A stretch of 64,000 nucleotides of DNA, taken from sequence record NC_048821.1; one strand, 5' to 3'. The notes below the pieces were generated by a model that saw only the letters and a list, made by a program, of their open reading frames with translations, was not told where the DNA came from and searched no databases. How positions within the stretch are numbered: the stretch's first letter is position 1; each line of letters starts with the position of its first letter. Below are positions 50,199 through 62,582 of the stretch, piece by piece. Made by a program: the position numbers and the translations under genes.

Positions 50199-50337
50199 TT
50201 AAAAACTAAGTGACATGTATTATATGTTACAAAACCTTTTTACCCCATTTTTATTGAACGGTTACTTTGTACTCTAAAATCTTGTTATTTTACCTGTTTT
50301 TTCATCGTTATTTTCACCCCTAAAAGTGAAAGGCGAT

Positions 50338-50421
50338 GGGGAGAAAGAGGGGCAAGGTGATAGGGGCAAGGTGATAGGGGTGTCAAGGTTGAGTGGGTGT
50401 CAAGGTTAGTTGGTTCAAGTT
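50338..50421 (+). repeat. G-rich direct repeats (CAAGGT core x4 plus CAAGTT) with four GGGG runs
   Basis: GGGGCAAGGTGATA x2 (50349, 50363) and GGGTGTCAAGGTT x2; cores at 50353, 50367, 50384, 50401, 50416. Confidence 0.8.
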
Positions 50422-50651
50422 AGTTAAAAGATTCGGGCAAAGCCCAAGATAATTAATATTAATATATTAATATATCTAACTATAGAGTATGACTTCCTTA
50501 CAACGTAACGAGTATCACGAGTGAAGTGGTTAAGGTAAAGAGTCATACGTTAAAGGTATAGATACATAGTAGGATGTCCGTTAAGGAGTCCTACTAGGGT
50601 TTATACTGCTTTTTAAATATTTAAGTTAAGATTAATTAAGGTTATTAGACC

Positions 50652-56074: not shown

Positions 56075-56093
56075 GTTCTATATTACTTTAGGG
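56075..56093 (+). promoter_or_regulatory. Putative early promoter GTTCTATATTACT-TT-AGGG
   Basis: Second copy of the 48206-48224 motif; upstream of 56153 and the AraC operon. Confidence 0.7.
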
Positions 56094-56152: not shown

Positions 56153-56932
56153 ATGAGTAAAAGAATTCAACAGATAAAGAATACCAGCTTACACCATTTA
56201 CACGGAATGATCGTTACCGCTAAAGGTAAGCCTTATCGTCAAAACAACATTACGTTTACCGTAAAGGGGAACAAACAAGTACGTTTAACTCGAGCTCAAT
56301 TTTGGTTAGAACATTTAACTAAGCTACGAGAAGGGTTTCCCATCCATTTAGTGGACCAAGCGGAAGAGTTTCATTTCAAAGAAGTCTTATTACCGACTTA
56401 CGAAGACTACGTGGTGTTCGCTCCTTACGTTACTAAGGTGATCAGTTGGGAGGGATTGAACTTATACATCTTACCAGGGTTCTTAGGGAACGCTGTGGCG
56501 GAAGATGGTAAGATCTACGAGCTATACGTGGATGAAAGAGCGAAGCAGTGGTATTGGGGTGAGATCTATCCTAATCAAAACCAATGTTACGATTTGATCA
56601 ACAGTATCGATGGAGATATGTTAGAAGTTAGCACGGATGACATCATCTATTTGTTGAAGTCGTCAGTCGTTACTGGGGATGATTTGAGTGACTACTACGC
56701 TAAGCGTGTAGTGAATCGTCGAGCTGAAGTAGCGTTAGAAGACGGTTGGGTGGATATCGATCCAAAAGACATTCAATCACCAGATCACGTAGCTGCGTTG
56801 AAACACGCTGAAAAAGACAACATGTTAGTCAGAATAGAAGTGAAACCTAAAACCGTCGGAGAGGCTTTCTTGCAAGCTTATCGCCGAGGTGGTTTCGAAG
56901 CACTTCCTTGGGAAGGTCGAATGGCCTCCTAA
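56153..56932 (+). CDS. Hypothetical, possibly a degenerate NUMOD4/HNH-derived DNA-binding protein
   Basis: ILPGFLGNAVAEDGKIYE resembles the NUMOD4 IPGY..Y.VS..G.V motif; no HNH catalytic residues seen. Confidence 0.4.
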   Translation: MSKRIQQIKNTSLHHLHGMIVTAKGKPYRQNNITFTVKGNKQVRLTRAQFWLEHLTKLREGFPIHLVDQAEEFHFKEVLLPTYEDYVVFAPYVTKVISWEGLNLYILPGFLGNAVAEDGKIYELYVDERAKQWYWGEIYPNQNQCYDLINSIDGDMLEVSTDDIIYLLKSSVVTGDDLSDYYAKRVVNRRAEVALEDGWVDIDPKDIQSPDHVAALKHAEKDNMLVRIEVKPKTVGEAFLQAYRRGGFEALPWEGRMAS

Positions 56933-56939
56933 CCTTACG

Positions 56940-56971
56940 CCCTACTTGCTTAACGGCAAGTAGGGTTATTT
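56940..56971 (+). terminator. Intrinsic terminator
   Basis: CCCTACTTGC-ttaacg-GCAAGTAGGG followed by TTATTT. Confidence 0.75.
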
Positions 56972-57005
56972 CTACAAACTCAATATAAATCATTAAGGAT
57001 TAATT

Positions 57006-58184
57006 ATGTCCATCGAGTTACCTATCGCTGAAGATCCAATCACAGCATTGACTTTTAAGAACATAGAAAAGTACTATAAGGAAAAGCGGAAGTTTACTGA
57101 TATCGCTAAAATTCAAAAGATTTGTCCCAACGCGATTACCAAACGTTTTGAAATCCAAGGGTTCGAAACCCCGGTGTACTACTTGAAAGAGTTACGTAAA
57201 GAGTTAGCTAAAACTTTAGTCACCGAAGGTGAGCTCTCATTGAGTGAGATAGCAAAAACCCTCGGTTACGATAAGACAATGAATTTCTACGTTTGGTACC
57301 AGTCTGTTTTTGGAGAACGTCCTACTAAAGTGCGAGCAAGAATGGGTCTTAAGTCTAAGACTCCGTGTCTAGGTGTGATCGACGCTATCGCTGAATCTAT
57401 TGCCTCAAAGATCGATCTCAACCCTAACCTTTACAAAAACGCCACTGAGCTCATGGAAGGTCACGAATATAGTGTCGTTTACATTAAGCGCACATTTATC
57501 AAAATGTACGGTAAGACACCTCGAGCTTATTTATTGGACCGACAACTAGAGTACGTTGCAGGCCAAATAAAGAATCACGGTTATAAGGAAAGTCGTTTAA
57601 TGGAAATGACCATGCATAACGCACCTACCGGACTCAATAAGGCTTTCAAAGCTAAGTACGGTATGACGACCAGTGATTACGGTGAATCTTTGTCGATCGG
57701 CACGTGGGCTAAAGTTCATGGTGAAAACGTGTGGGTGATGCCCTCACTTATGGATGAGATCTTGGACAACGTTACTGAGAACTTACTTGACGACCGCTTT
57801 AACCTTTACCAACTAAGAGACTTCTACGGCCTCAACTCACATTCTTGGGAACGAATGTTTAAGCTCTACACAGGCATGCTTCCAAGTAAGGCGCGTCAGT
57901 GTATTCGTTTAGAGTTAATCGTTTACTTCCTGCAAAACACCCGCTGGAAGTTCGCAAAGATCTTGAGAAAGGTTGGTTCTGATTATGAGTATGACGTCAG
58001 ACGACAAATGAAAGAATGTTACGGGTTGACTCCGGTTGAGATCCGTAAACTAAAAGGTCCACTTACCCGCTTTCATAATACGGAACAATTCGTTCGTTTT
58101 GTTAAATCCAACGCCGACCAATGTATCGAAGACGATAAGATTCGCTTAGAGAAAATCAAGGAAATTGAATTATGTACCCCGTAG
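57006..58184 (+). CDS. Protein of three tandem AraC/XylS DNA-binding domains, no effector domain
   Basis: Three HTH-HTH units, e.g. LSEIAKTLGYDKTMNFY..FG.RP, F.K.YG.TP..Y, F..YTG..P..R..RL. Confidence 0.85.
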   Translation: MSIELPIAEDPITALTFKNIEKYYKEKRKFTDIAKIQKICPNAITKRFEIQGFETPVYYLKELRKELAKTLVTEGELSLSEIAKTLGYDKTMNFYVWYQSVFGERPTKVRARMGLKSKTPCLGVIDAIAESIASKIDLNPNLYKNATELMEGHEYSVVYIKRTFIKMYGKTPRAYLLDRQLEYVAGQIKNHGYKESRLMEMTMHNAPTGLNKAFKAKYGMTTSDYGESLSIGTWAKVHGENVWVMPSLMDEILDNVTENLLDDRFNLYQLRDFYGLNSHSWERMFKLYTGMLPSKARQCIRLELIVYFLQNTRWKFAKILRKVGSDYEYDVRRQMKECYGLTPVEIRKLKGPLTRFHNTEQFVRFVKSNADQCIEDDKIRLEKIKEIELCTP

Positions 58185-58897
58185 ATAAAGAATCCAGAAC
58201 TCGTTTAATGGATGATTTGGACAAATGGATAAGTGAACACTACCTAGAAAAAGTCACCGTCAAAGACTTAAGTCATCAACTAGGCGTGTACATTCCAGAT
58301 GTCTACCGTTTGTTTGCCGAGCAACGTAATACTACTCCTGGTGAATACCTTCGACGCAAACGCTTAGTCAAAGCCAAGTCTTTATTGGAGTCAGGAGTCA
58401 GACCAACGTTAGCCGGAGCCCACGTTGGTTATTCTCACTTTCAATCTTTCATCAAAGAGTACAAAGCTTTCTTTAAACGCCATCCTCGTGAGGATTATGT
58501 GGATTCCCTCGAGGTCCCGACTATGGATTCTTATTCTAAAGAAACTATGGACCGATATTATCCTAGTGAGTTGCGTGAGAAGATATTGGATCATTTGATT
58601 AAAAACATCAAAGTTAATTTTAATTACGCTGATGTAGAAAAGAAGTTTGGTTTACCAGATCGTAGCTTAAGCGAAATGTTTGAACACTATTACGGTAAAC
58701 CCTATCGTGAATGGAGAAAGGATACTAGGATGAAATTAGCTAAGGACTTGCTCCACAAAAATCCAAGTATTAAGATTGCTGACTTGGCGACTACTGTAGG
58801 TTCTTGTAGTGCGACCTATTTACGGAAGCAATACCAAGAAGTCTACGGAGTTAATATCGTTGAACTCCGGGAAACTTTGAGAGGCGCGTGTGTCTGA
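58172..58897 (+). CDS. Protein of two tandem AraC/XylS DNA-binding domains
   Basis: VTVKDLS..LG...LF....TTPGEYLRRKRL..AKSLL..VGY...SF; second unit RM..AKDLL..I.DLA..VG. Confidence 0.88.
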   Translation: MYPVDKESRTRLMDDLDKWISEHYLEKVTVKDLSHQLGVYIPDVYRLFAEQRNTTPGEYLRRKRLVKAKSLLESGVRPTLAGAHVGYSHFQSFIKEYKAFFKRHPREDYVDSLEVPTMDSYSKETMDRYYPSELREKILDHLIKNIKVNFNYADVEKKFGLPDRSLSEMFEHYYGKPYREWRKDTRMKLAKDLLHKNPSIKIADLATTVGSCSATYLRKQYQEVYGVNIVELRETLRGACV

Positions 58898-59591
58898 TAA
58901 GAAATCCAGAGAGCTCAAGAAACTCAAAAATGCGGCTAAGAAATATTGTCTGGAGCCTAATGCCTCGGAATTAGTTTTAAAGAAAACGAGGATGACTCCC
59001 TCTAAAGTCATTAAAATATTCCGTGATACAGGGGAGGGGAGTTTGTATGATTACATTACCCATTTAAAAATGTTAGAGGCGAAGAAACTCTTAGATGACA
59101 CAGATCTTAACCTAACCTCTATTTCTAGAGCAATTGGGTATGCTAATCATAAATCGTTGAGAGAAAACTTCATCAAACAATTTGGTATGTATCCCTTGAA
59201 TTACCGCAACCGACCGAAGACCAACGACCTGGCTTGGGATTTGTTTAAAACTCATCCCAAGTTAACGGTACACCGTCAGACGTTTTTGCTAGATCATATC
59301 AAGAAACATTACAAAAGTTCTGATTTAAGCATCCAGACTCTATCGGACCGATTCCGTTTAACCCACCAAGAAATAGAACTGATTATCAAACACCATTATA
59401 GATTGGGATTGAAACAACTCTTATTAGACTTGCGTTTAAATCAAGCACATACCAAACTGCCTAATTACTATAAGCCATTGCGTCAACTCGCTGAGGAGTT
59501 AGGCTTCCTTGACTTTAGTTATTTCGTAGCGAAGTTCGAAGGGAAATATGGAATGGGACCTAAACGTTATCAACAACACGCACGTCTTTAA
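58890..59591 (+). CDS. Protein of two tandem AraC/XylS DNA-binding domains
   Basis: KM.EAKKLLDDTDL.LTSIS.AIGY...F.KQFG.YP..YR; LAEELGF.D.SYF..KF..KYG.GP..Y. Confidence 0.88.
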   Translation: MSDKKSRELKKLKNAAKKYCLEPNASELVLKKTRMTPSKVIKIFRDTGEGSLYDYITHLKMLEAKKLLDDTDLNLTSISRAIGYANHKSLRENFIKQFGMYPLNYRNRPKTNDLAWDLFKTHPKLTVHRQTFLLDHIKKHYKSSDLSIQTLSDRFRLTHQEIELIIKHHYRLGLKQLLLDLRLNQAHTKLPNYYKPLRQLAEELGFLDFSYFVAKFEGKYGMGPKRYQQHARL

Positions 59592-59620
59592 ATTAATCTT
59601 TAACTCAGTGTACATTGTAT

Positions 59621-60189
59621 GTGAGCGGTACAAGATTAGGTTTAGCTAGACTAGCGTGTCCGAAAAGAAAAGGTGTATACCGCGAGTCCGACCTAGGAAG
59701 TTATTCCTTCATTACAACCGCTCACAGCTTACTCATATCGTGTTACGAGTATAAAGCGCAGATCGCCACCCCCATGGCGATCACTATTTTCAGTCCAGAA
59801 TGACGACCTGTATCCCTTGTCATCGATGTTAGTTACTTGTTCTGGACTGAACCCTATTTGATCTAATGCCTCCAAATGGTTTTCTCCCTGTGTTACACAG
59901 CCATCACCATTAGGTCAAATAACTAAACGGAAGCCGAGCCTTCTGTTTGTTGGACCGAGTTGCCTTTAACTCCTCGGTCCCCAGCGGTAAACCCCTTGAC
60001 CGCTATAAAAAAAGGAGAGCGTTTTCTGCCAGCTCCAACGCTCCAATAAAGGGATGCTACGCCGAGGCTAGCCGGCTGGGTTTTCGACCGCAAAAGACAA
60101 ATGTCTTTGAGAATCCAGTTCGGGTACTTTCAGCGAGGTACTGTGAAACACTGCTTTGACCATCCCGAAGCCCGGGATGGTACTTTTTT
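59621..60189 (+). ncRNA. Candidate large structured ncRNA (~570 nt), family not recognised
   Basis: At least nine stems with G-U pairs favouring the plus strand, a TATG late-promoter-like start and a terminator at the end; no credible ORF. Confidence 0.6.
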
Positions 60190-60192
60190 GCA
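60159..60192 (+). terminator. Intrinsic terminator upstream of phuZ
   Basis: ACCATCCCG-aagcc-CGGGATGGT followed by ACTTTTTTGCA. Confidence 0.85.
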
Positions 60193-60229
60193 TTTTAAAT
60201 ATTTTAGCTAAACTTTAAAGGAGTTTATT

Positions 60230-61591: not shown

Positions 61592-62080
61592 ATGTACGTT
61601 ATCAACACGGGTCAGATTATGCGAGATCTACTCACGTTCGATAAGTTAGATTTTGATGAATTCTTAATCCATGGTTATGTTCATGCCCTGGTGGAAGACG
61701 TGATTCGAGTTTTTAACTCTAAAGACTTCGACCAAGCTTACGATCGCATCGGACACCTAACTACATTGTTAGGTAATAACCCGGCGGTGGAAACCATTTA
61801 TATGGACCAGCTTGAAAATCTACGCAAGTATGTTCGTCAGGCTGGATGGGACCCACGTGTCCATATTAAGATTTGTGAAGATAAAAGCATAAAAGATCGA
61901 AGTGGGATTATTCAACAGATCTTACTTATCATGGACCTGGATGCCACATTCGAATCAATGTTAGTCGAAACAGATTCAACTACTTCTTTAGGAGAACTTG
62001 TCAGTGATAACCCTAGCCAGGACGATCTCGCAAAAGTTATCGAAGATGAAATTGCTAGCTCTGAGTCTGGAGCAAGTTAA
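61592..62080 (+). CDS. Hypothetical protein (phiKZ-like core-block position)
   Basis: RBS AAGGGG; acidic 162-aa ORF. Confidence 0.65.
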   Translation: MYVINTGQIMRDLLTFDKLDFDEFLIHGYVHALVEDVIRVFNSKDFDQAYDRIGHLTTLLGNNPAVETIYMDQLENLRKYVRQAGWDPRVHIKICEDKSIKDRSGIIQQILLIMDLDATFESMLVETDSTTSLGELVSDNPSQDDLAKVIEDEIASSESGAS

Positions 62081-62582
62081 AGCTTTAACCTGGGAGTTGA
62101 TGTACGAGAATGACCTCAGACCCATACCTTTAGAGAAAACTGCTGATGTTCACGCAGGTTTGTTGTACATGGGGATTAAGCTGGTGTGTGACCACCCAAA
62201 GTTCAAACTGGGCCCCGCTCCCTCCGAACCAATTAAATACGAACCCTTGTATTTTTACGACAAAGCGGCTGAACGAGAAGACTTTGAAATAGTAACACTG
62301 TATCCGGAATACGACATCTCTTTTTTGAATCGTTATTATTCCGCCAGAGTGTTAGATGAAATTACATCGGAAATACAATTCGGTGTCTTACAACTGTTGT
62401 ACAGCGTGACCCCGAATACTTATTTTGACCATATCGTTACAGTAACTGTACCGAATACTGAATTTATGGTCATCACTGTACACGAAGACGACTTAGAGGA
62501 AAGCGATGCTGACGATATATCAGATGCAACCGATGGCGGACTTCATTCAGAGACGATGTTTGACGGATTTCACCACAGTTAG
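61998..62582 (+). CDS. Hypothetical protein (start uncertain, possibly 62046)
   Basis: ORF in a tight gene array. Confidence 0.55.
   Translation: MSVITLARTISQKLSKMKLLALSLEQVKALTWELMYENDLRPIPLEKTADVHAGLLYMGIKLVCDHPKFKLGPAPSEPIKYEPLYFYDKAAEREDFEIVTLYPEYDISFLNRYYSARVLDEITSEIQFGVLQLLYSVTPNTYFDHIVTVTVPNTEFMVITVHEDDLEESDADDISDATDGGLHSETMFDGFHHS

Follow-up and report, generated by a model that had tools for sequence, protein, structure and literature searches.

The three genes analysed here, gp205, gp206 and gp207 (hereafter gpA, gpB and gpC), lie in a 64,000-nt stretch of DNA (the window) that corresponds to positions 173,510–237,509 of record NC_048821 and forms the end of the genome of Photobacterium phage PDCC-1, a giant marine jumbo phage (237,509 bp; Gorgonvirinae, Aphroditevirus). 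By megablast, window positions 56900–59700 are 100% identical to PDCC-1. The PDCC-1 genome codes for chimallin (the nuclear shell protein), the tubulin PhuZ and several split RNA polymerase beta subunits, which bears out the phiKZ-like, nucleus-forming context assumed in a first-pass annotation of the sequence. Two relatives of PDCC-1, phiKT1019 and phiKT1028, have been placed in the Chimalliviridae and called nucleus-forming, with microscopy of sfGFP–ChmA fusions (PMC10587174).

gpA, gpB and gpC are tightly translationally coupled. The first two overlap by 13 nt and the last two by 8 nt, and a Shine–Dalgarno-like AAGGA or GAGAGG closely precedes the start codon of each of the three. The coordinates and overlaps claimed for these genes in the first-pass annotation are exact (Table 1). 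The upstream gene, gp204, is 81% identical at the protein level to its counterpart in phiKT1019 and 63% to that in pTD1, and a gene-free stretch that holds a putative structured RNA (59592–60229) follows gpC and precedes phuZ.

Table 1 Features of the gp205–gp207 locus and related sites (window positions unless marked as record positions; aa, amino acids)
Feature	Position	Strand	Description
gp204	56153..56932	+	259 aa; function not assigned; PHROG 24322; in every case the gene immediately before the AraC genes
gpA (gp205)	57006..58184	+	392 aa, ATG start; three AraC DNA-binding domains
gpA domains D1, D2, D3	57030–57344; 57375–57692; 57744–58055	+	aa 9–113; aa 124–229; aa 247–350
gpA extras			beta-hairpin linker, aa 234–243; 29-residue C-terminal helix, aa 360–388
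gpB (gp206)	58172..58897	+	241 aa, ATG start
gpB domains D1, D2	58190–58501; 58568–58879	+	aa 7–110; aa 133–236
gpB linker			flexible, aa 113–119; conserved short helix, aa 123–129
gpC (gp207)	58890..59591	+	233 aa, GTG start
gpC domains D1, D2	58923–59219; 59280–59582	+	aa 12–110; aa 131–231
phiKZ-type promoter-like box TCTATATTAC	56077..56086	+	67 nt upstream of the gp204 start codon
Extended box sites	record 19485, 73853, 102326, 112370, 130790, 147278, 175607, 221015, 221719, 229588 (= window 56079)		
Box variant	record ~3920		before chimallin
Hairpin, 12 pairs, then T-run	56939..56966	+	terminator- or attenuator-like; between gp204 and gpA, ~40 nt before the gpA ATG
Motif GTACATTGTATGTG	59610..59623	+	19 nt after the gpC stop codon
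Hairpin and T-run, terminator-like	60159..60181	+	first strong terminator past the operon; the gene-free stretch before phuZ ends here
ATT(A/G)TATG sites	50219, 55840, 59614; record 3806, 51762, 51803		

The three proteins consist almost entirely of AraC-type DNA-binding domains. Pfam HTH_18 recognizes three, two and two stretches in gpA, gpB and gpC (89.0, 91.7 and 89.5 bits, respectively; curated cut-off 33.6 bits). With a hidden Markov model (HMM) built from the domains, the window yields seven full-length copies and none besides, each spanning model positions 1–5 to 100–103 of about 105 with an E-value of 1e-27 to 1e-33. AlphaFold2 models gpA as three seven-helix units (pLDDT 88.2) and gpB as two (pLDDT 84), and in both models the units have the features of the family: a length of about 100 residues and seven helices, with two helix-turn-helix (HTH) motifs on a long connecting helix. 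The Pfam matches, the domain HMM and the two models together confirm the 3+2+2 complete AraC double-HTH units described in the first-pass annotation. A co-fold of gpA, gpB and gpC as a heteromer scored 0.00, a value that counts neither way.

The AraC domains take up 79–86% of each protein, and no other Pfam domain was found in any of the three. What lies outside them consists of short linkers, the beta-hairpin linker and C-terminal helix of gpA and the short linker helix of gpB, which leaves no room for a sensor domain; the absence of a sensor or dimerization domain, also claimed in the first-pass annotation, is thus borne out. A fold search with the gpA model retrieved the DNA-binding domains of MarA, SoxS, Rob, AraC, GadX, YesN and AdpA (TM-score by target 0.7–0.82); these were single-domain matches only, and the search found no chained AraC domains among solved structures. 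Sequence matches of the three proteins to solved structures include the DNA-binding domains of AraC, SoxS, RamA, GadX, Rns, AdpA and YesN.

All three proteins match PHROG 7620, 'transcriptional regulator' (gpA, E = 4.7e-112; gpB, E = 6.7e-64; gpC, E = 3.8e-53), and gpB and gpC occupy the same columns of this profile as gpA D2–D3. The alignment of the two shorter proteins to gpA D2–D3 is consistent with duplication of a two-module unit. Entries for the same family in PHROG, RefSeq and UniProt already carry the names 'transcriptional regulator', 'AraC-type DNA-binding protein' or 'HTH araC/xylS-type domain-containing protein'. The automatic names 'lactose operon transcriptional activator' and 'Msm operon regulatory protein' come from sensor-bearing proteins and are misleading for gp205–207.

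MarA, SoxS and RamA share with gp205–207 a build of AraC double-HTH only, without ligand or dimerization domain (the phage sequences and models match 1bl0, 7w5w and 7bef), and act as soon as they are made. They differ in that each is a single module of 107–130 aa that sits as a monomer on one asymmetric ~20-bp box and activates host sigma-70 promoters, whereas gp205–207 each fuse two or three modules, none having the single-domain length of about 107–130 aa for the whole protein, and are co-encoded as a set of three by a phage whose transcription relies on polymerases of its own. As there is no sensor domain, the activity of gp205–207 is probably ligand-independent and would be set by the amount of protein. 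In Myb R1R2R3 and in polydactyl zinc-finger proteins such as TFIIIA, a single polypeptide covers a long composite site with a string of small DNA-reading units; the principle is alike, but folds and lineages are unrelated and the likeness is an analogy only. A literature search found no paper on chained AraC domains in phages, and the papers that it found on AraC together with jumbo or nucleus-forming phages only use AraC as an arabinose induction system. What is new here is a known fold with a known sensor-less mode in a chained, multi-gene, phage-borne form.

In the related phages listed next, the three genes occur in the same order, with a gp204-like gene ahead of them and a long gene-free stretch behind. 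Protein identity to PDCC-1 is 70–95% in Aphrodite1, USC-1, 2 TSL-2019 and 5 TSL-2019 and about 30–50% in phiKT1019, phiKT1028, pTD1 and VP4B (Tidunavirus included), with the same 3+2+2 layout. In a tree of 56 domains from eight phages, each of the seven positions forms one clade (support 91–100), and therefore all seven modules were present in the common ancestor and none has since been lost or swapped: ever since the ancestor of the Gorgonvirinae, each of the seven has remained an orthologue group of its own. Paralogous modules are 12–24% identical to each other. The ratio of non-synonymous to synonymous substitution rates (dN/dS) of the AraC proteins is 0.05–0.15, and selection on their genes is purifying. 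They nevertheless evolve faster than their neighbours: compared with phiKT1019, identity is 32% for gpA, 50% for gpB and 40% for gpC, against 81% for gp204, 83% for PhuZ and 93% for gp214. gpB is the most conserved of the three. The genes are real, old and conserved.

Their distribution is narrow. HMMER searches of 1.84 billion representatives returned only 8 relatives below 1e-10, tblastn against phage records found full-length relatives only in Vibrio and Photobacterium phages, and by neither method are the genes present across the Chimalliviridae as a core gene would be. Two metagenome contigs carry reduced or partial sets. L017 (71 kb, with chimallin and tubulin), a more distant lineage that holds one of the 8 HMMER relatives, has only the three-module gene, followed by 385 gene-free nt and then tubulin; on L018 the three-module gene is accompanied by a two-module gene and by the beginning of another. 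Of the elements of the operon, the three-module gene is thus the one with the widest spread.

Divergence among the Aphroditevirus phages is a mosaic (window positions 57006–57600 and 58890–59591 compared with loci L007 and L008), with gpB nearly invariant. The D1–D2 part of PDCC-1 gpA is close to that of 2 TSL-2019 and far from those of USC-1 and Aphrodite1, and for gpC the reverse holds, the gpC of 2 TSL-2019 being an outlier (67% identity, synonymous sites saturated). This mosaic suggests an exchange of alleles. The third AraC gene of pTD1 (L003:7848–8552) is annotated from an internal ATG as a 197-aa protein; its frame has no stop back to an ATG lying 111 nt further upstream, from which the protein would have 234 aa, the same as in VP4B.

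PDCC-1 also has a fourth, divergent AraC-like gene outside the window, gp100 (record 108161–109129; L026:8161–9126), annotated as hypothetical. Its N-terminal domain (aa 31–115) is recognized by our own HMM (E = 2e-14) and by hhalign (93.6%), with the Pfam score below threshold. The count of seven AraC domains in the first-pass annotation thus stands for the operon and falls short for the phage as a whole, to which gp100 adds at least one AraC-like domain. A 314-aa protein of pTD1 matches the three-module gpA model over 300 columns and, judging from its length alone, is possibly the gp100 orthologue.

Chaining of AraC domains is not unique to phages. The metagenomic protein P0036 (L005:4702–6735; 677 aa) consists of six chained AraC domains and nothing else, much as gp205–207 consist almost only of AraC modules, but its gene lies amid bacterial-type genes (ECF sigma factors, peroxiredoxin); a scan of bacterial genomes for relatives gave one weak match. 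P0012 (L006, also metagenomic) has chained modules like the phage proteins, four in number, to which it adds ankyrin repeats, and a neighbouring gene encodes more. Bacillota proteins in the AlphaFold DB and the ESM Atlas have two AraC modules like the phage proteins, but with sensor domains; a predicted structure from the AlphaFold DB superposes on gpA D2–D3 with an r.m.s.d. of 4.5 Å over 234 residues. In sequence, P0036, P0012 and the Bacillota type resemble the phage proteins only weakly (E = 1e-11 to 1e-4), and all of them are uncharacterized.

All seven modules are basic (pI 8.8–9.8), most recognition helices carry a basic residue, and the second-HTH signature (G-Y/F ... F ... F/Y ... G ... 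P) is retained in each orthogroup. Nucleic-acid binding is plausible given the basic domains and the canonical second-HTH signature; to sequence-specific DNA binding and contact with sigma-70 RNA polymerase, the basic pI and helix residues lend only indirect support. Between genera the recognition helices are 1–57% identical, compared with 29–39% for the scaffold, and so are no better conserved than the rest of the domain. As the reading helices differ between genera, their targets must differ or co-evolve.

As for expression, the TCTATATTAC box upstream of gp204 is the only recognizable promoter upstream of the AraC genes, and there is no copy between gp204 and gpA. It matches the predicted promoters of phiKZ and 201phi2-1 (PMC7058600, Table 2). 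In the PDCC-1 genome, TATATTAC is 41-fold enriched in upstream regions, and the box lies 68–86 nt upstream of the gp204 orthologue in eight of nine lineages. Besides gp204, the genes that have it in front are GroEL, the thymidylate synthase operon and an RNA polymerase beta gene, and a close variant, TATATAAC, precedes chimallin. The box has an extended form, (T/C)CTATATTA(C/T), often followed by ..GGTG and with AAATATTTT ahead. A sigma-70 promoter scan gave 16 matches, compared with 19.3 in shuffled sequence, and thus no excess. The hairpin between gp204 and gpA is kept as a structure in 8/8 phages, with differing stem sequences and compensatory changes. From this arrangement, the operon would be transcribed early, with read-through or attenuation at the hairpin.

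The gene-free stretch downstream of gpC was compared across the window (59592–60229) and loci L002–L004, L007–L010 and L017. A TA...TATGTG motif occurs within about 30 nt after the last AraC gene in 9/9 lineages, and the PDCC-1 copy, GTACATTGTATGTG, may represent either a promoter for the structured RNA or its 5' end. The hairpin that closes the stretch is conserved with compensatory changes, L017 included. Rfam and tRNA scans of the region gave no matches. The region is retained next to the AraC genes in pTD1, VP4B and phiKT1028, in which there is no phuZ at the locus, and because it is kept there the RNA gene is tied to the AraC genes and not to phuZ.

A shorter motif, ATT(A/G)TATG, occurs nine times in the genome, seven of them intergenic (intergenic DNA makes up 7.4% of the genome). 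Most of the seven lie in gene-free stretches of 168–640 nt, and the three window copies are each close to the 5' edge of such a stretch. The motif may be a second class of promoter or a mark of several non-coding RNA genes.

Another gene-free stretch of the window, 50199–50651, has a non-coding core of 180 nt (50376–50552). The stretch contains iteron-like direct repeats (GGGGCAAGGTGATA, twice; GGGTGTCAAGGTT.AGT, twice; GGTTCAAGTTAGTT), a small hairpin, an AT-rich palindromic run (TAATTAATATTAATATATTAATATAT) and an inverted repeat (GTATGAC...GTCATAC), and could be a replication origin or another RNA gene. The core is 88–89% identical between genera (Tidunavirus), compared with 25–75% for the neighbouring proteins. 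The repeat array at 50348–50424, partly inside this element, was considered as a common binding site for the AraC modules; this is unlikely, because the element is near-invariant (88–89%) whereas the recognition helices are variable (1–57%). Two words present in two gene-free stretches, ACGAGT and TACGA, are not enriched, and repeats near the operon are chance-level pairs only. Elsewhere in the window, a 194-aa open frame with a TTG start (61998–62582) spans most of 62081–62559, a segment unannotated in RefSeq.

Of the functions proposed in the first-pass annotation, the reading of long composite DNA sites is the most natural. On balance, we think it somewhat probable that gp205–207 are ligand-independent, MarA/SoxS-like DNA binders built as arrays for long composite sites, with a part in regulating or occupying DNA at an early stage of infection. 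Each protein would be a chain of three, two or two seven-helix double-HTH modules that binds double-stranded DNA sequence-specifically. If each module reads its own subsite of about 17–20 bp, a protein may cover a composite site of about 40–60 bp, the flexible linkers letting the modules follow the DNA. The genes would be read from the phiKZ-type promoter before gp204, through the conserved hairpin, and the proteins are probably made early, because this promoter box is common to the genes for chimallin, the non-virion RNA polymerase and nucleotide metabolism. Their job may be to switch transcription or to occupy DNA. One possible target is the host chromosome, on which AraC modules are able to contact sigma-70 RNA polymerase; host promoters are favoured because AraC modules are suited to that polymerase. 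The other is a set of variable phage sites, such as the flanking RNA gene and phuZ region, which are favoured because they are adjacent to the AraC genes.

Several observations weigh against this interpretation. The usual basic residue is missing from helix 3 of gpB D2 and gpC D2 and from helix 6 of gpA D1, and the pTM values of the AlphaFold2 models (0.60 for gpA and 0.48 for gpB) mean that domain orientation is not fixed by them. No DNA target came to light: the 22 intergenic regions of the window share no DNA motif other than terminator T-runs. The timing is uncertain because the hairpin and T-run separate the only recognizable promoter from gpA, and a search for public RNA-seq containing PDCC-1 found none, only DNA and metagenome runs. 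Finally, phages of the phiKZ type do not rely on host RNA polymerase to transcribe their genes, which makes classical AraC-type activation of phage promoters unlikely.

Alternatively, the modules might act chiefly on host RNA polymerase, holding its alpha C-terminal domain and sigma-70 region 4 through the surfaces used by MarA, SoxS and Rob in 'pre-recruitment'; chained modules would then sequester or redirect the enzyme early, with DNA binding secondary. The MarA/SoxS-like, sensor-less modules, the likely early promoter class and the fact that the phage's own genes need no host RNA polymerase fit such hijacking, as does the combination of fast divergence with a kept architecture, which is typical of host-interaction genes. 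The sequence variation, however, does not track host species: gpA of PDCC-1, whose host is Photobacterium, is 88% identical to that of 2 TSL-2019, whose host is V. alginolyticus, whereas the difference between two V. alginolyticus phages is 30%. To hold three RNA polymerase surfaces, fewer modules would do than seven distinct ones that are each conserved separately. We regard hijacking of the host enzyme as unlikely, with a small share of the probability.

An architectural or RNA-linked role, in which the arrays coat, bridge or organize phage DNA or bind the downstream structured RNA and its gene, strikes us as comparably improbable. Many basic domains on flexible linkers would suit an architectural protein, but the positional orthology of the modules and their distinct reading helices suggest specific rather than bulk binding. 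For the link to RNA there is a model in TFIIIA, which binds both 5S DNA and 5S RNA. The gene-free RNA stretch follows the last AraC gene in 9/9 lineages, among them pTD1, VP4B, phiKT1028 and L017, no strong terminator separates gpC from the RNA, and bacterial regulators are often encoded beside their targets. Against this, we know of no AraC domain that binds RNA, the RNA has a conserved promoter-like start motif of its own, and the adjacency may be mere conserved gene order. A stronger version, in which the arrays and the downstream RNA form one functional unit, the modules binding the RNA gene and possibly, like TFIIIA, the RNA itself, is more doubtful still. Such a unit would amount to a ribonucleoprotein or to a feedback switch, found only in this branch of the nucleus-forming phages.

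That the proteins are decoys titrating host AraC negative regulators or other partners of AraC proteins is very improbable, as the sole support is that AraC-type domains are made without the rest of the protein, whereas AraC negative regulators bind the linker or dimerization region of AraC proteins, which gp205–207 lack, and no such negative-regulator partner was identified.

Nucleus-forming jumbo phages are candidates for therapy against Vibrio disease in aquaculture and models of viral compartments, and little is understood of how they take over the host and time their genes. The seven chained DNA-reading modules, which form a conserved and probably early set, offer a concrete candidate for such control, and the present value of this set is that of a well-defined, testable gene set rather than of a demonstrated mechanism. 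If gp205–207 do read composite sites of 40–60 bp, they would be a natural case of modular, ligand-free recognition of long sites built from a bacterial fold, with possible use as programmable binders. If they act on the host, the phage would be turning the cell's commonest activator fold against the cell. And if the arrays and the neighbouring RNA prove to be one unit, AraC domains would for the first time have a role linked to RNA.

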